From the NCBI GenBank assembly GCA_025594325.1, contig JANHCV010000001.1, positions 2,356,001 to 2,420,000 on the forward strand: a DNA stretch of 64,000 nucleotides, in the 5' to 3' direction. Origin of the DNA: Blastocladiella emersonii ATCC 22665. Taxonomy: Eukaryota; Fungi; Blastocladiomycota. Positions 3,685 through 45,240 of the stretch are shown one piece after another (position 1 is the first letter of the stretch; every line of letters starts with the position of its first letter). Under the pieces are notes generated by a model. That model worked only from the letters and a program-made list of their open reading frames with translations, made no database searches and had not been told where the DNA came from. Made by a program: the position numbers and the translations under genes.

Positions 3685-4243
3685 ATGCCCAAGAACAAGG
3701 GAAAGGGTGGCAAGACTCGCCGGAGGGGAAAGAACGAGGGCGACGGCGTCAAGCGTGAGCTCGTCTTCAAGGAGGACGGCCAGGGTACGGCTCGCTTCGC
3801 ACAACGTCGCTCGTGCCTCGACCTACGACTGATCCCGTCTCCGCCCTGCCGCACCCGTCTAGAGTACGCCCAGGTCCTCAAGATGCTCGGCAACGGCCGC
3901 CTCGAGGCGCAGTGCTTTGACGGCATCAAGCGCCTCGGCACGATCCGCGGCAAGATGCGCAAGAAGGTGTGGATCAACGTCGGCGACATTGTCCTGATCG
4001 GCCTGCGCGAGTTCCAGGACGAGAAGTGCGACGTGATCCTCAAGTACTCGGCCGACGAGGCCCGCAACCTCAAGGCGTACGGCGAGCTCCCCGACACGGC
4101 CAAGATCAACGAGACGGACGGGCCCGAGGAGGGCGACGATATCGACTTCGAGTTCGACGTCGACGAGGTACGGTGTTCGCGGCGTGGCTCGGTTGCGGGG
4201 ACCCGGACTAACTTGCACTCCTCCTCGTCACTTCTAGATCTAA
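3685..4243 (+). CDS. TIF11: Translation initiation factor eIF1A; exons 3685-3784, 3863-4167, 4238-4243
   Basis: [10 protein letters not shown]..., [41 protein letters not shown], acidic tail ending DVDEI*. Confidence 0.97.
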
Positions 4244-4465: not shown

Positions 4466-6865
4466 CTAGTGCGCGTGCGGGTGCGCATGGGAATGCGAGT
4501 GACTGTGGCCATGGTCGTGGCCGTGCGAGCAGCTGCCGTGGTCGTGGTGGTGGTGATGATGATGACCATGGCCATGGCCATGGCCGTGACCATGATCGTG
4601 CGCGTGGTGGTGATGGTGGTGATCGTGCCCTGCCGCTGCTCCGACAGGCACGAACCCGGCCGCCGCCGCGACGGCCGCGGGCGCCGCGTACGCCAGCTGC
4701 TGCTGGGGCGCGTACGCTCCCACGGCGCCGGTCGGGTACACAAACTCGATGGTGACCTTGTTGATCCCGCGGGCAGCGAGCGCGCCGCGCGCCGCGTCGA
4801 GGTACATCTGCTCGTCGACGTTGGGCGGTGGTGGTGCGGCGAGGGAGATGCGGAAGGCGGCGTGGATATCGCTTCCGCCGTCGTTGCTCCAGATGCGGTG
4901 GTCGATGTGGGTGGCGTTGCCCGCGAGGGCGCGGCGCAGGTCGTCGTGGATGCCGGGCAGCGCGTTGGCGAACCGGCGTGGGACCGTGTTCATGAGGACC
5001 GACAACGAGTAGGAGAGGAGCGGGATGGTCGATGCGAAGATGAGGATGGCGATGAGCAGCGACGCGAGCGGGTCGAACCCGGTCCACCCGAACTGGTAGA
5101 TGAGCAGCGTCGAGATGATCACGCCCACGGACCCGAGCGCGTCGGCGAGGATGTGCAGGAACACGCCCTGCATGTTGGCGTTGTCGTGGTGGTGGTCGCA
5201 CCCGCCGCCATCGCCGCCGCCATGGCCGTGGTGGTGGTGGTCGTGGAACGAGAAGAGACCGACCATGTTGACGGCGAACCCGACCGTGGCCACGATCAGC
5301 AGCCGCTCCGTGTTCATCTCGGGCGGGTGGATGACGCGCTCGATGCCCTCGATCAGAATGTACAGCGAGATGAACACGAGGAAGATGCCGTTGCCGAACC
5401 CGGACAGCGTCTCGACGCGGTTGTACCCGAAGGTGAAGGTGGAGCTGGCGCCCCACTTGGCCATGAGGGCGGCAAACAGGCCGACGGCGAGCGCGATGCA
5501 GTCAAAGAACATGTGGATCGCGTCCGAGATGAGCCCGAGCGAGTTGGTCCACACCCCGTAGGCCAGCTGCACGAACATGTAGCTGAGGTTGATGCACAGG
5601 AAGATGAAGATGGACCGCGAGTCCTTGCTCTCCCAGATGGGCTTCACGTAGTTGCGCCAGTACACGCCGAGCCCGTGGCGCTGCGCGCCGCCGCCGCCGC
5701 CGGGCCCCATGGCGAGCGCGCCGCCGAGCAGCGACGAGGTGCCCGCGAGCCCAGCCCCGCCGCCCGCGGGCGCCCACGCGGCGGCGAGGACGTGCGGGGC
5801 GCTCTTGGTCAGCGAGTCGATGGCCGAGTAGAAAAGCACGGCGCCGGCGATCTCGAACAGGGTCGGGAAGCGGTGGAAGGCGGCGAGCCCCGCGGCGCAC
5901 GCGACGGCGGTGCGCCACCCGTGGGTCGCGATGCGCTGCAGCGGGGCGCCCTGGACCATGGCCGAGTGGTTGCCGAGCGCGTCGAGCGCGACGAGGGTGG
6001 TGCCGAGGAGCACCATCCACAGGGTCAGGTGGGCGAGCGTGTGCGACTCGAGCGCGGTGCTCGAGTGGCCGAACAGCGCGTAGGGGACGACCGACATGGC
6101 GCACGCGAGCGGCGTCGAGGCGGCGAACAGCGACAGGTTGTCGTGCGAGGCGGCGTCGTTGCCCGCGACGAGCGTCTGCTTGACGCGCGCCTGCAGGATC
6201 GCGGTGACGATGGCGCACCCAATGAAGGTCCACGCGGCCGCGGTGAAGGAGACCTCGGCGGAGGTGAAGCCGAAGTCGTTGGCGAACTCGAGCGCGACGG
6301 CGCCCAGCAGCGCGAGCGTGCCGAGGTGCTTGGCGCGCGTCTGGTCGCTGCGGCCCTTGGTCTCGGCGAGCACGGTCGGCAGCCAGAGGCCGACGTACTC
6401 GGTGAACATGAGCACGCTACACGATGTGTGAGATGGGATCGAGGGCGTGTACGGCGAGTGGGGGAAGCACGCACCGCAGGACCGAGGCATGCTTGGTGGC
6501 CTCGAGCGTGAACCACAGGCGCAGCCAGGAGAAGAAGGCGAAGGTGAGCAGCTTGGGCCACTGCTGGCGCGAGACGCGGGTCCACGGGAAGCGGGCGACG
6601 GCGGCGGCGATGAGCGAGGCGACGGTCAGGGCCCAGAAGACGAGCCCCGCGACCGAGAACGAGTACTCGCGGATCAGGTCCTGCGCCGTGACGAGGCCCA
6701 GCACCTTGGCGGCCTTGGCGACGTGCAGCCACACCAGGGACGGATTCCTTGGCAGCTTGCGCGATGACCTGCGGGGCGATGGCCGTAGCGGCAGGGGCGG
6801 TCAGGGCGCTGCGGGTCGCTCGGCGGGGCGTTGATTGCATGACATGGTAGGGACCTGTGATTCAT
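4466..6865 (-). CDS. CDF zinc transporter, ZnT5/Msc2/Cis4-like, with extra N-terminal TM domain and His-rich tail; introns 6417-6474 and probably 6769-6854
   Basis: CDF motifs [46 protein letters not shown]; His-rich loop; C-terminal His-rich tail. The start exon (MNHR, donor GTCCCT) is less certain. Confidence 0.88.
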
Positions 6866-38489: not shown

Positions 38490-40571
38490 TCATGGCGGCG
38501 GCGCGTCCCGTTGCGCCTGCAGCTCCTCGAGCGAGCGCAACCTCGCCTCCCACTCGTCGGCGAGCTGTGCGTCGGGCTCACCGCCGTCCCATCCGCTGCG
38601 CAGGTGCTCGACGAGCTTGCGCGTCGCCTCGACGTGGCCCATCCACGCGGCGCGGTAATAGTACGACACGGCCGCGCTCAGCGAGGCGGGGATCGACAGC
38701 GCGCTGGCCGCCGTCGCGGGCATGCTGGTCGCCCACCCGCGCGAGCCTGCAGCGGGCGCCGGGTCGCCCTGAACCGCGGGCCACGGCGCTGGTTCCTCGT
38801 CCTGCGCATCGCCAGCGTCTCCGTCTGCCGAGTCCGGGAGCCGCGGCGGGAACGGCGGCGGCGCAAGGACCGCGGGCACGACGGGTCCCTCGAGCCCCGT
38901 CTCGTACACGGTTCCGATATGGAACAGCGCGTCAGCGCTGGCCGGGACCTGCGCAGCGGCCGCGTGCCACGCGTGCCACGCGTCGGCGTACCGGCCCATG
39001 GTCCACCACACGTACCCGAGGTTCGCAAGCGCATGGACGTCCCCGCGCGCGGCGGCCGCGCGGTACCACGTCATGGCGAGCACCCAGTCCCTCGGCACGC
39101 CGCGGCCCATCTCGTAGCACGCGCCGAGCGAGTTCATCGCCCTCGCCGACCCAGCCCGCGCCGCCGTCGCCCACATCGCCGCCGCGGCCTCCCAGTCGCC
39201 ACGCACGCGCGCGCGGTTCGCCATGGCGGTGCGCGCCGTCGCGCACCCGCGCCGCGCCGCCTCGGCGTACCACTCGTCGGCGCGCTTCGTGTTCCCGCTG
39301 CGGTCCGCGAGCGCCGCGAGCGCCGTCATGGCCGGGACGTGCCCGGCGCGAGACGCCGCGAGGAACAGGTCCGCGGCGCGCCGCGTGTCCCGCGCGACAA
39401 CGCGGCCGCGCGCGTACATGAGCGCGAGCGCCGTCATGGCCTCTGCGCTCGGGGTCGCGGGTTTCGGCGCGGTCTCGCCGGCAGCGCGTCGGTAGCACGC
39501 GAGGGCCGCGGGCAGGTCGATGGCGGTGCCGAGCCCGCGCTCGTGCAGCGTGCCGAGCAGGTGCCACGAGGGTGCGTGTGGCGGGTTGACTTGCGCAGCG
39601 TCGGAGAGCAGCTGGAACGCGGTCGCGTTGCAGTGCGGGACGCCGAGGCCGTGCAGGTACCGCTCGGCGAGCGCGTACAGCCGCCCCGCGTCGTTGAGCG
39701 CGTGCTCGTTCCGTGCGCTCGAGGCGTCGGGCGAGGAGGCGCGTGAGTCGTCCTTGCGCTTGCCGCCGCGGAGATGCATCGCGGCCAGTTTGGCGGACAG
39801 GAGCTGGTCGAGGTCGACGGCGGGCGTCTGCGCGGGACTCTTCTCGCGCGCCTCGGCCATGGCGATCGAGAGCACTGACAGCTACACAAAGAGAGTGGCG
39901 TTAGAGAGACTCGATGGAGAGGCATTGGGTGTGAGAAGACAACGTACGACATCTCGAAGCGTCGCTCGCGCCGAGTGAGCAAGAGTAGCCAACTTGTTGC
40001 GTCGGGACCCGGGGAACAGCTTGGCCGTGATGGGCTGGTTAGCGCCCGTGATGCGGCGGAGACTGAACTCGAGCCGGAGCAGCGCGAGGTGGTGCTCGTA
40101 GAGGGCGCACTCGAGGGGACCACCGCCCGCGTCTTTGCCACACCGAAACAGCTGCGAGGGACCGTAGCCGGCGGTCTCGCTGACCGTCTTGAGTGCGGCG
40201 CCGAGCGGGTCGACGATGCTGTCCAGCGTCGACTACGAGATGGGCGATTAGCTTAAGGCCGAGACGGAGCAAAGCACCGATCGTACTCTCAGGTAGACGA
40301 GCGACGCGCGAATCGGCTCCCACGGCGCATCCTTGGGAAGCCGCTCCGTCTCGGCCCCGATGGCCGACATGATGGTGATAGTTTCGCCGAGCTCGAGGAC
40401 CCCGCCGGCGAGTCGGACCCTCTGTGTGAAAGCAGAGTCGCGCGTCGGGCTGTACAGTGGCGACGGGACCGCCGTCTGCGCGGTCATGGGCGTTTTGAGT
40501 TCATTTTGCTGCTGGGCAATTGGCGCCGAGATTTGGATTGCAGGAGGTCGCTGATGCGTTGGGACAGGCAT
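38490..40571 (-). CDS. Sel1-like repeat protein; introns 39882-39947, 40233-40286; start codon uncertain
   Basis: LAERYLHGLGV, LLGTLHERGLGTAIDLPAALACY, AMNSLGACYEMGRGVPRDWVLAMTWYRAAA, LFHIGTVYETG. Confidence 0.85.
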
Positions 40572-40950: not shown

Positions 40951-41588
40951 CAATACTACTGCTGCGGCGTGAGCACGCGCGCGTCCCACTGCACTGCATA
41001 CTGCACTACTCGCCGCCGACCCCTCACGGCGCAAACTTTGCCCAAGCACGAGCACGCCGGGGCTCATCCTGGGGCCGCGCCACGAACGAGGTAGTGTGAT
41101 CACGCTTGCTGCCTCGATACGATCCACACGGGGGGAGCTGGGCTGCCGACTTTCGGCGGACCCCTGCGTGTGCGATACTCTGCCACCCGCTCGCCCGCCC
41201 GCGCACACATTGCAACTCACACCCCTCGCATCGCTCCCCTTGGTCGTCCAGGTCGCACCCGTCACTCGTACCTGATCAGAGATCATCATCTTGCACCATT
41301 ATCGCGCCGCCGGTCGGCCATCTCGCTCGCTCGCCCGCCCTGTGGGCTCGATCGCCGCTCTACGACGGCGCTCCCTACTCGCTGCACGTCTCGCCGCGCG
41401 CCACCGCCGCGCTCGCGACTCAGCGCCGCGCAGACCCATCGTACTTCTCGACGCCGACTCGACGATCCGCCTCGCTCTACGCTGGGCGTGGGGCCCGCCT
41501 CATCGTCGTCGTCCACGAGCGTCCCGCTACTCGAAACCACACCTGCTCCTGTCCGTGACACGGGCCAGATCCTCGCTCGCGCATCGCC

Positions 41589-44500
41589 ATGTCCGAGCCC
41601 GACACAACACCACCACCCGAGGCCTCGCCCGAAAGGGTCGACGGTTCTCCCTCGCCCCCTCCTCCACCTCGAGCAGCCTCCGCCTCGTCCGTGACCCGCC
41701 CGCGCTCCGAGGTGGAGCTGACGCCGTCGGACCCGCACGCTGTCGCCATTTCCTCCTCTACCACCGCGTCCGATGCACCAACACCACAACCGACCGCGCC
41801 GCCACCACCCGGCCCTCCCGAGGCCGTCGTGACCATCATCTCCTCGGACGGCCCTGACGGCGCAGCAGTCGGCCGAGGCGGCAGTGGCGGTGGAATACCT
41901 GCGCTGCACACGAACGGGGTCCCGGTCGGCGGCGGCGAGTCGGCTGCTGCGCCACCAGAACCGCCCTCGCCAACGACGACGAACGCCGGCGACCCCGACG
42001 CGCCGTCCGAGGCGGCCAGCACGAGCCCGCTCATCACGGCCGGCAGCGTCGCGCTGTCGCTCCCGCTCACCTCGGTCAACGCCGGCGGAGGGTCGGCCAT
42101 CACCGTCGACGGCCTGTACGAGCAGGCCCTGGCCGGCGCCGGCGCCTCGTTCGCGTCGGGCGACGGCGCGGGACCTAACGGCGGCGCGACCGCGCTCGAT
42201 ACCGACATTCCGCCAACGCCGACGTCGGACGCCGGGTCCAAACCGCGTCGACCGGGCGGCAGTACCGCAGCAGGTGCCGGACCCGGTGGGGCGGGCGGGG
42301 GCGGGGGCGGCGCGGGCGGCGGTGGGGGCGGCGACAAGGACGACCCGATCATGATGAACAACCACCACCGGCGACCGGCGGTCGCGGACATGAAGGCGGG
42401 TCTGCCGAACCTGCTCGAGGTGGACGACGAGAAGGAGAGCGCGCTGGCGCGGCTGCAGCGGCGGGTCGAGGAGCGGCGCGCGCACCTCGAGAAGATCCCG
42501 GTCAGCCAGCGGTATCTCGGCGAGACGTCGTGGTGGCACTTTTCGACGTCCATCATCTTCGCGGGGCTCGCCATGCTCAACTTCGGCATCAACATCCGCA
42601 TCATCCTGTCGGACGTGCCGACGGTGCTCGCGCTGCCGCCGTCGGACCGGCGATACGAGCTCCTGACGCCCAACATCCGCGCGCTGCTCGAGATCTTCAA
42701 CGCCATCCTCCTGTACGGGCTCGTCAAGGACGCGGGCCGCGGGCTCATCTTCATTATCCTCGTCGCCACGAGCAACATGAACTGGGCCATGCTCAAGTGG
42801 GGCTACGCCTTTATCGCGCACTCGCCCTTCTTGCTACCCCTCTTCCTCTCGACGACGCACCGCGCCAAGATGATCCCCGCGCTCTCGCTCATCAACCACC
42901 CGAAGAGTACGTCGTCTCGGTCTCTTCCTTGTTCGCGCCGAGCTAACCACCGCGTGTAGTCGTGTTCTGGGACATTTTCTTCGGCGATGTGCCGTCGGCG
43001 ATCCTGTCGTTTCTCGTCAACTACGGGCAGTGGAACGCGATTGTGCCGATTCTCACCATCGCAGCCATTTTCTTCACGACGCTGTCGCGCCTCACGCGGT
43101 TCCTGTGGATTGCCCTGCTCATGATGAACGAGTACGGCCAGAAGCGCGCGCGGTCGCTCCGCCTGCTCAAGCACCTGTACCTCTGGGGTCGCGGGCTCGA
43201 GTACTACATTGTGTTTCTCGGTACGTTCACGCGTCTTGACTCGTGGTTTGTGGCCGTGCTGACCTTCGACTCGTGCGTGTAGGCGATGATGCGGACAAGC
43301 AAAAGCTCATGTGCGCCGATCCGGGAACCGTGGTGGCGCAGCAACCCCCTCGCTGACGCGTCGCCGCCGCCACACGTGTGTGTAGCCAACACGTCAAGTC
43401 GCGGGTGCAAGAGTTCCAGGAGATGAAGGCCAAGCACATCCAGGACGCGTGGGCGCGCGGGTTCAAGTCGATCATCATCCTCAACACGCTGCAGACCGTG
43501 GTCAGCCTGCTCAGCGGCATCTACCGGTTCCAGCTCGACAAGGCGCCCGACGTGTCCAAGGATCTGGCCGAGGTGCGCGGTTCACCGTAATGCTGCTTGC
43601 AAGGGAAAACTGACCACCAAGCCGTGTAGTTTGAGCGGATCGTGCGCGAGTACGAGCCCGAGCTGATCGCGCTGCGCAACAAGGAGCTGTGGAAGCTGAG
43701 CATCAAGGACCGGCACATTGACGTGATCAACCAGCTTTGGAAGTGCGAGCTAGTCAAGGCGTCGCTGAAAAAGTTCCAGACCACGCACGCCGACAAGTGG
43801 CAGGAGCGCCGCTTCTCGCGTCTGCTCGGCGTCAAGGACATTCTCGACGACCCGCACCAGATCACCTCGCTGCTGAGTTCGTCGCTCGCCGTCGACGAGT
43901 AGTACGTTGCGCGCTGCCTTCCACGGGATCTTCTCGGAGCTCACGGCAAACAACGACCCCGTGTGTAGCTGCCTGTCGAACGCAAGCCGGATCTTGCAAA
44001 ACGACTACGAGCCGACGCCCGAGGACCTGTCGCACATGCCCATCAGTCTGACGGAGCTGCTCTTCACCGAGCTGTGCAAGTCGGTCTCGTACCACGTCAA
44101 GGACAAGGTGCTGGCCAACAACATTTGCATCCTCGACGTGCCCAAGGGTTTCTCGCGGACCAAGCTGCAGGCGCTGGTACGCTCACTCTCATCGCTCCTC
44201 CAGTCCATGGCCACGGACTCACACCTCGCTCATCCGCGCAACCACAGATTCCCTTCTGCCAGACGCTGATCCTGTTCCTCGACATGAACAAGTTCGACGA
44301 GATGGTGATGCTGGCCAAGCCCAAGAGCAAGCACCCGCACGGCGGCCACCACGCGGGCGGCGGCGGCCATGGCCTCGCGAGCCTGTCGCCCGTCAGCATC
44401 GTGCAGCACGGCGGGCCCGATGTCGTCGAGCTGTCGGCCATGGACCTGCCCATGGGCGGCACGCAGTCGGGCGCGAACCTCGGGACCACGTCGAGCGAGC

Positions 44501-44997
44501 TGCCGAACCCGAACGGGACGGCGGCCGGCGGTGGCGCGGGCGCCGGTGGGGCCACGGCCACGAACGGGCGCGACGGGTCAGCAGCAGGCGGCGGAGCGGC
44601 CCCCGGCGGCGGCGGGTCGGGCGGTGTGCTCAAGCCAAGGTTGCAGGTGGAGCTCGAGTTCTTTGAGCGGATCTGCAACGCCAAGGACAAGAACAACATG
44701 GTGACGGGGATCCTGGTGTTCTGGAAGAACTACAGCGTGTTCAAGTCGCGCGTCAACACGCCGGGCACGCTCGACAACTTCACCAAGCTGTACCCGGACT
44801 ACAACGAGCGAAGTCACGGCACGCTCAACGGGCCCAACGTGATCCGCTACTTCAAGCGCCGCATCCTGCGCGCCGCCAACCCGGGCGACCGCTACGTGTC
44901 CATCATCCCCGACTGGGAGCTCAACCGCCGCTTCGACCTGTTCGCCACGCTCAACGAGGTCATCTTCGACCACTATGTCGTGCACCGTGTGACCTAA
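41589..44997 (+). CDS. Multi-pass membrane protein fused to a degenerate heterotrimeric G-protein alpha domain (1007 aa); exons 41589-42906, 42960-43220, 43283-43310, 43386-43572, 43630-43901, 43969-44176, 44248-44997
   Basis: Exon lengths sum to 3024 nt (1007 aa plus stop) with all introns GT..AG. The C-terminal half is collinear with G-alpha: YIVFLGDDADKQKLIQHVK, GFKSIIILNTLQTVVSLL, INQLWKC, EYCLSNASRILQNDYEPTPEDL, ICILDVPKG, LILFLDMNKFDE, FFERICN, ILVFWKNYSVFKSRV, FTKLYPDY. Confidence 0.85.
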
Positions 44998-45240
44998 CCC
45001 CCCTCTCTAGACCAACGGACGGGGCGGGCGGGGGCAGCGGCGGGTTCTCGGCGGCGTTGTGTGTGATCCGTTCGTTGTTGACTGTCCTGTCCTCCCTCAT
45101 TCCGTTACCAACCACAGTAAACACGCGCGCGCGAAAGTTTTGGAATCGGGATTGATTGATTCGCGAGGGAACGAACGGACTGAGAGAGCTCGGCAAAGGG
45201 AGGAAGAATATACATAGGGAACGACACTCGCGACGCGGGA

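Follow-up and report, generated by a model that had tools for sequence, protein, structure and literature searches.

A Membrane-Fused Fold of the G-Alpha Class, Predicted to Be Free of Nucleotide, in Blastocladiella emersonii and Other Blastocladiomycota

Results

The G-alpha subunit is the textbook example of a nucleotide switch. In a stretch of 64,000 nucleotides from Blastocladiella emersonii ATCC 22665 (contig JANHCV010000001.1, positions 2,356,001 to 2,420,000 of the forward strand; hereafter called the window), we identified a gene at 41589–44997 on the + strand whose product is a predicted membrane-fused pseudoGTPase of the G-alpha class, occurring in a single phylum. Combining an analysis of open reading frames with a splice model yielded seven exons, which together form an uninterrupted frame of 1007 codons. 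The encoded protein consists of a disordered low-complexity region (residues 1 to about 284), a multi-pass membrane domain (about 313 to 496) and a G-alpha-like domain (497–1007). Judged from its sequence and predicted fold, the latter domain very probably does not bind guanosine triphosphate (GTP), and we consider it probable that the protein contains a complete membrane-fused G-alpha fold with a rebuilt pocket, working as a nucleotide-free module. All positions are given as window coordinates on the + strand, and residue numbers refer to the 1007-residue model, being higher by one than those of the deposited protein H9P43_000890 past residue 688.

Homology to G-Alpha and Predicted Fold

Searches with single exons yielded only weak matches, namely two colinear hits to the Pfam G-alpha family with E values of about 0.06–0.08 and weak hits in the PDB; full-length orthologues and a family profile were needed to make the homology clear. 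The whole protein matched the Pfam G-alpha family (PF00503) with an E value of 1.2e-8 and the isolated domain with 9.3e-10, both staying under the curated cut-off of 48.8 bits (34.9 bits for the window protein), and the orthologue from Paraphysoderma cleared this cut-off with 50.2 bits. A profile built from seven family members retrieved 143 distinct PDB sequences at E ≤ 1 (best E value 5e-5), and the 60 matches listed of these were essentially all Gi alpha-1. The match to Gi alpha-1 is composed of three colinear stretches, which represent helix alpha-A, linker 2 together with switch I, and the part from alpha3 to beta5. Language-model features of the last 125 residues fell into G-alpha clusters in 34 of 60 matches.

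An AlphaFold model of residues 497–1007 showed a core with predicted local distance difference test (pLDDT) values of 70–92 and one disordered stretch of about 100 residues. Searching the PDB with this model by Foldseek returned G-alpha proteins for all of the best 50 matches (E values from 6e-10), and VIA-align gave Z scores of 16–19 over up to 336 aligned residues, with receptor-bound open states as the best fits. The model and both structure comparisons thus describe a Ras-like fold with an inserted all-helical domain, and we regard both the homology to G-alpha and the predicted G-alpha fold as firm.

The helical domain, linker 2 and the part from alpha5 to the C-terminus are in register with canonical G-alpha. 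The best conserved element is alpha5 (N-E-x-I-F-D-H), which ends exactly at the canonical C-terminus. An earlier note on this DNA, which was made from the letters alone, had proposed that the scaffold of the domain is kept, and its motifs YEPTPEDL, FFERICN and LYPDY were indeed colinear with Gi alpha-1 in a HMMER alignment. The same note had also claimed an insert of roughly 35 residues in the helical domain. Extra material is present at this place, but the alignment puts it at about 40 residues, and its fixed length in all orthologues of the family alignment shows that this is no loose insert but a conserved extension. The second proposed insert, a Gly/Ala/His-rich stretch of roughly 100 residues at switch III, was recovered at residues ~783–885 (44320–44628); it contains 31 Gly and 14 Ala among 103 residues, is predicted to be disordered and varies in length from 77 to 299 residues among the species.

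Loss of the Nucleotide-Binding Motifs

None of the five G-boxes has its canonical form in the window protein or in any of the six full-length orthologues (six Blastocladiomycota species). We placed G2 (switch I) and G4 by the HMMER alignment to Gi alpha-1, and G1, G3 and G5 by the topology of the model, as listed here:

G1 remnant, + strand: GDDADKQK after beta1 (EYYIVFL); Gly codon split between 43220 and 43283–43284, other seven residues at 43285–43305
G2 (switch I) remnant, 44039–44050, + strand: PISL opposite RVKT; HMMER alignment to Gi alpha-1
G3 remnant, 44135–44149, + strand: DVPKG closing beta3, immediately ahead of the switch II helix; model topology
G4 remnant, 44725–44736, + strand: KNYS opposite NKKD; HMMER alignment to Gi alpha-1
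G5 remnant, 44902–44916, + strand: IIPDW in the beta6–alpha5 loop, at the position of TCAT; model topology and family alignment

These assignments agree with what the earlier note had read by eye. The change of GAGESGKS to GDDADKQK, encoded almost wholly by a micro-exon at 43283–43310, was borne out by the gene model and the orthologues, while those of RVKT to PISL and of NKxD to KNYS were reproduced by the alignment to Gi alpha-1. The replacement of DVGGQ by DVPKG, with loss of the Gln, fits the model topology at the end of beta3, and the TCAT motif, which had been called unrecognisable, has its place in the beta6–alpha5 loop taken by IIPDW.

The G1 region reads GDDxDKQK, GEDADKQK, GDEPDQIR or GDPEERGD in the orthologues and is canonical (GxxxxGK[ST]) in none of them. 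In the model of the window protein, alpha1 already begins two residues past the G1 Gly, leaving a beta1–alpha1 loop of only two residues. At switch I, six of the seven proteins have PISL and the Sorochytrium protein has CVSM, the catalytic Arg and the Mg-binding Thr of RxxT being lost, and G3 occurs in the orthologues as DVPKK, DVPKR, DLPRD or DIPDS, without the catalytic Gln of DxxGQ. Switch II is conserved inside the family and appears non-canonical in a by-eye alignment. Scanning all + strand frames of 41000–45200 gave no occurrence of either GxxxxGK[ST] or DxxGQ, and the only NKxD motif there, NKFD at 44287, lies within beta4 and does not represent G4. Sub-profiles of the G1 and G3 regions retrieved no G-alpha from the PDB (the top match for G1 was BCL10, which we take as chance), and a C-terminal sub-profile gave only marginal G-alpha matches. 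By these profile searches, the G1 and G3 regions have diverged past sequence recognition.

The replacements are themselves conserved throughout the phylum, G1 having an invariant Gly with Asp or Glu as the next residue, and the others being D-x-P in G3, W-[KR]-N in G4 and IIPDW in G5. The invariant positions of the former pocket are G527, D745, P747, W917, N919 and the IIPDW motif at 977–981. From this pattern of conservation, the nucleotide pocket is judged to be rebuilt rather than left to decay, and the acidic, shortened P-loop, together with two invariant Trp residues where guanine would once have been bound, suggests that the pocket is shut or occupied by parts of the protein.

The same invariant positions would also fit a new binding site. 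The rebuilt, non-canonical pocket might still bind a guanine nucleotide, another nucleotide or some other ligand and act as a slow switch, as has long been debated for plant XLG proteins, which retain weak binding despite degenerate boxes (PMC13185490). We consider this quite improbable for the Blastocladiella protein. The five boxes are lost together, including the Lys and Ser/Thr of the P-loop, the Mg-binding Thr and both residues of NKxD that confer guanine specificity; moreover, the acidic P-loop remnant should repel phosphates, and the beta1–alpha1 loop is predicted to have a length of just two residues.

Gene Structure and Relatives

The window DNA is GC-rich and of eukaryotic character with short introns. 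The seven exons are arranged as follows:

Exon 1, 41589–42906, + strand: low-complexity N-terminus (residues 1 to ~284), conserved amphipathic helix and start of the membrane domain (residue 313, nucleotide 42525); supported by the open reading frame and splice model, H9P43_000890 and orthologues
Exon 2, 42960–43220, + strand, 261 nucleotides (nt): the final pair of long membrane helices (up to residue 496, nucleotide 43129), alpha-N-like helix and beta1 (43130–43219); the Allomyces exon also has 261 nt
Exon 3, 43283–43310, + strand, 28-nt micro-exon: P-loop remnant (G)DDADKQKL(I); required by the frame and present in orthologue gene structures
Exon 4, 43386–43572, + strand, 187 nt: remainder of alpha1, linker and helix alpha-A with an invariant TLQ motif; HMMER alignment to Gi alpha-1 residues 67–96, conserved exon size
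Exon 5, 43630–43901, + strand, 272 nt: all-helical domain including the fixed-length extension of ~40 residues; family alignment, structure model and exon sizes
Exon 6, 43969–44176, + strand, 208 nt: linker 2 (YEPTPEDL), PISL, beta2–beta3, DVPKG and switch II helix; HMMER alignment to Gi alpha-1 residues 152–189, model topology and family alignment
Exon 7, 44248–44997, + strand: beta4, switch III insert, alpha3 (FFERICN), beta5 with KNYS, LYPDY, beta6 with IIPDW, alpha5 and stop codon

The six introns are 53–75 nt long, start with GT[AG]CG, end with AG and contain a branch-like site (CT[ACG]AC) each. The translated model is 99.8% identical to H9P43_000890 (1006 residues) of B. emersonii ATCC 22665, and the B. 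emersonii locus is a genuine intact gene. The sole difference to the deposited protein concerns the junction of exons 5 and 6, where our model uses the donor GTACGT at 43902, resulting in VDEYC, and the deposited one a GT three nt upstream at 43899, resulting in VDD-C. The Tyr-Cys gained by the donor at 43902 was found in all six orthologues; the two donors could be used alternatively.

Relatives were collected by phmmer, word-index searches and cluster look-ups. An exhaustive phmmer search with exon 7 against 1.84 billion representative proteins returned five proteins only. The word-index protein searches also gave five close proteins but missed two distant orthologues, and they have little power for remote paralogues. 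Altogether, the family comprises proteins from B. emersonii, Blastocladiella britannica, Catenaria anguillulae, Allomyces macrogynus (two copies), Sorochytrium milnesiophthora and Paraphysoderma sedebokerense, plus one metagenomic fragment. All named relatives belong to the Blastocladiomycota and share the layout of a membrane domain with a G-alpha-like domain, and as far as these sequence searches reach, the family is confined to this phylum. Their database entries carry the name 'hypothetical protein'. The fragment of 154 residues, located on a 37-kb metagenome contig from JGI, bears the C-terminal motifs of the family (VLVFWKNYNAFKVRVN...LYSDY), which indicates that uncultured relatives exist.

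We rebuilt the exon chains of the orthologues until the translation equalled the deposited protein exactly, and obtained these exon sizes around the start of the G-alpha-like domain:

B. emersonii: 261, 28, 187, 272 and 208 nt
Allomyces, both copies: 261, 28, 187, 272 and 208 nt
Sorochytrium: 264, 28, 184, 272 and 208 nt
B. britannica: 289, 187, 272 and 208 nt, the 28 nt being joined to the upstream exon
Catenaria: 310, 187, 272 and 208 nt, the 28 nt being joined to the upstream exon

Since the 28-nt exon has equal size and place in Allomyces and Sorochytrium, it is ancient. The earlier note had raised alternative splicing as a way of restoring a P-loop or a DxxGQ motif; no splicing variant or frame with this effect was found, and because B. 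britannica and Catenaria encode the degenerate P-loop without an upstream intron, alternative splicing cannot restore the P-loop. The intron upstream of the micro-exon (43220/43283) is in phase 1 and interrupts the first Gly codon of the P-loop remnant, the final base of exon 2 (43220) opening the codon of Gly527. In animal G-alpha genes of the Gi class, the P-loop is likewise encoded on a small exon of about 43 nt, and the intron in front of it interrupts the P-loop Gly codon in phase 1. If this exon structure holds, the gene for the Blastocladiella protein could have inherited its micro-exon from the general structure of G-alpha genes, and the exon would not be an oddity.

Two of the deposited orthologue models contain faults. 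In that of Sorochytrium, a first 'intron' of 234 nt (positions 4779–5012 of locus L006) holds the conserved membrane-loop segment HRxK...NHP in frame, and the model of Catenaria starts too late, with the LPNLLE...TSWW segment lying upstream of the annotated start (positions 3698–3900 of locus L004). Both models look as if they deviate by annotation only.

A gene for a Sel1-repeat protein lies head-to-head upstream of the gene for the membrane/G-alpha-like protein (38868–39893 on the − strand, extending to about 41289). In B. emersonii, a distance of only about 300 nt may separate the two start codons, if the ATG-initiated reading frame ending at 41289 represents the first exon of the Sel1 gene. 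With tblastn E values of 1e-18 to 1e-28, a head-to-head Sel1-repeat neighbour was present in both Blastocladiella species, in Sorochytrium and at one of the Allomyces copies, and those outside the window are found at positions 1–2133 of locus L001, 1196–2698 of L003 and 976–3556 of L006. The conserved divergent arrangement hints at a shared regulation or function of the pair.

Selection on the G-Alpha-Like Domain

Ratios of nonsynonymous to synonymous substitution rates (dN/dS) were calculated pairwise from a codon alignment by the method of Nei and Gojobori, using the G-alpha-like domain without the switch III insert:

Two Allomyces copies: dN/dS 0.036, with an unsaturated dS of 0.29
B. emersonii vs. 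B. britannica: dN/dS 0.068, approximate, dS being saturated
B. emersonii vs. Catenaria: dN/dS 0.032, approximate, dS being saturated

A ratio near 1, by which the earlier note would have recognised a decaying pseudogene, is far from these values of 0.03–0.07, which point to purifying selection. Other parts of the protein gave higher values for the Allomyces pair, namely 0.077 for the membrane domain, 0.10 for the N-terminus and 0.15 for the switch III insert. Over all pairs, the insert ranged from 0.15 to 1.2 and was near 1 in those other than Allomyces. With the lowest dN/dS of all parts, the G-alpha-like domain is under the tightest constraint within the protein, and these estimates, together with the predicted fold, support the view that the pseudo-G-alpha is maintained by selection.

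Membrane Domain

The membrane part matched no Pfam family. Its AlphaFold model (pLDDT 74) contains four long helices plus short ones, and the last long helix runs unbroken into the alpha-N-like helix of the G-alpha-like domain. Structure searches returned generic helical bundles, with a four-helix iron-binding protein at Z 10.7 and all others at Z of about 7, including designed folds resembling G-protein-coupled receptors (GPCRs). TM-scores in the Atlas stayed below 0.5, and the Atlas features gave only unnamed clusters with scores of up to 0.84. A reading of this part as a seven-transmembrane GPCR was rejected on account of the missing Pfam family, the four long helices and the matches to generic bundles only.

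Three charged residues in the predicted membrane helices are invariant, namely K380 (42726–42728), D444 (42971–42973) and D449 (42986–42988), and charged residues of these helices fall in a motif W-D-I-F-F-x-D-x-P. K380, D444 and D449 could be partners in a salt bridge within the membrane, or they could bind an ion or ligand. The presence of invariant charged residues in the helices suggests that the membrane domain is more than an anchor.

With these residues and a dN/dS of its own of 0.077, the membrane domain might even be the functional unit, for example as a subunit of a transporter or channel, and the G-alpha-like part, for which no partner is known, would then be a structural leftover that persists as a folded cytosolic cap or assembly domain. 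We judge this to be improbable as well, because no other part of the protein is as constrained as the G-alpha-like domain (dN/dS 0.03–0.04), and its helical domain, linker 2 and alpha5 are kept in the canonical register, which goes beyond what a passive cap should need. A decaying pseudogene, a mis-spliced model or a chance resemblance to G-alpha, for which one may quote that the window protein taken by itself stays under the Pfam cut-off, is extremely improbable in view of the seven-exon open frame matching the deposited annotation, the exon sizes conserved between genera, the low dN/dS, the structural Z scores and the orthologue above the cut-off, and we rejected the pseudogene and chance-resemblance readings on the basis of the Z scores, exon sizes and dN/dS values.

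Discussion

Our proposal for the Blastocladiella protein is that the G-alpha-like domain would no longer cycle GTP and would serve as a permanently nucleotide-free ('empty-state') module. The alpha-N helix, being continuous with the last membrane helix, would replace the usual lipid anchor, and the receptor-facing side (alpha5 and the alpha4–beta6 loop) would be held against the cytosolic face of the membrane domain. This orientation is deduced from an alpha-N fixed to the membrane and a conserved alpha5 that ends at the canonical end. Instead of a nucleotide, the membrane domain or bound partners would then determine which state the module adopts, and the module would serve as a signalling platform. 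That the module docks on its own membrane domain or acts as a platform for binding partners is possible, and we put it forward tentatively. G-beta-gamma appears an unlikely partner, and the roles as scaffold, G-beta-gamma sink or decoy of RGS proteins, which the earlier note had suggested, are guesses. The better fit of the model to receptor-bound open states is weakly consistent with an empty-state module. A more far-reaching version would be a self-contained receptor-transducer, in which a small sensing membrane domain is permanently coupled to the nucleotide-free G-alpha-like module via the alpha-N/alpha5 geometry known from GPCRs, and signals pass to G-beta-gamma or effectors by conformational change without any GTP cycle; we are doubtful about this version.

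Several points weigh against the nucleotide-free module and its proposed mode of action. A non-canonical type of nucleotide binding is conceivable, and the G1 and G3 boxes were placed by topology or by eye instead of sequence statistics, given that their sub-profiles retrieved no G-alpha. The alignment used for folding consisted of seven sequences, and the model reached a predicted template modelling score (pTM) of 0.61, which makes the domain orientation weak evidence for an 'open' state. The docking of alpha5 is a proposal, the structure models covering the separate domains only. As dS is saturated between genera, the clean dN/dS ratio is that of the Allomyces pair, and expression of the gene and inclusion of the micro-exon are deduced from comparative evidence.

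Compared to canonical G-alpha (PF00503, Gi alpha-1), the Blastocladiella protein shares the two-domain fold, the colinear arrangement of alpha-A, linker 2, alpha3–beta5 and alpha5, and a C-terminus directly after alpha5. However, it keeps none of the motifs G1–G5, has no free N-terminus for lipid modification, as alpha-N continues a membrane helix, and contains the additional ~40 residues in the helical domain and the disordered switch III insert of the length range given above. GTPase folds which no longer bind nucleotide are known as pseudoGTPases, for example CENP-M or the pseudoGTPase domains of p190RhoGAP. The Blastocladiella domain is predicted to belong to this class, sharing with it a GTPase fold under selection with lost nucleotide motifs, but the CENP-M and p190RhoGAP examples are small Ras-like or related domains. 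In the literature, we found no description of a pseudoGTPase of the heterotrimeric G-alpha class with a helical domain, nor of one with a membrane fusion, and searches that included the locus tags found no description of the family.

A precedent for G-alpha function that does not depend on nucleotide is provided by plant XLG proteins (PMC13185490), which are reported to work with G-beta-gamma independently of nucleotide cycling (Lou et al. 2020, as cited in PMC13185490). XLG1–3 resemble the Blastocladiella protein in that a G-alpha-like domain, whose dependence on nucleotide is weakened or lost, is fused to a large additional N-terminal region. In contrast, XLGs are soluble and plant-specific, carry a Cys-rich region and a nuclear localisation signal, and have partly kept G-boxes, whereas the protein described here combines a low-complexity region and a multi-pass membrane domain with the loss of every box and occurs in Blastocladiomycota. 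Its origin looks independent of that of plant XLG. The genome paper of B. emersonii stresses the many membrane-domain fusions of this species (PMC9730499). Engineered GPCR–G-alpha fusions and natural ones of B. emersonii such as the rhodopsin–guanylyl cyclase BeGC1 likewise have a membrane domain whose cytosolic C-terminal end carries a covalently tethered signalling domain, but the membrane part of the Blastocladiella protein is not a recognisable seven-transmembrane domain, and its fused G-alpha is predicted to be dead.

A G-alpha fold that has lost all five nucleotide motifs, is under very strong selection throughout a phylum and is joined to a membrane domain would offer a clean natural test of the abilities that this fold has in the absence of GTP, which plant XLG proteins had already brought into question. 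The invariant residues that replaced those of the former pocket present a concrete structural target. The protein would add an unrecognised component to the sensory signalling of zoosporic fungi, for which B. emersonii is already a model owing to its unusual receptor fusions, and the receptor-transducer version, if true, would represent a signalling principle specific to the Blastocladiomycota.

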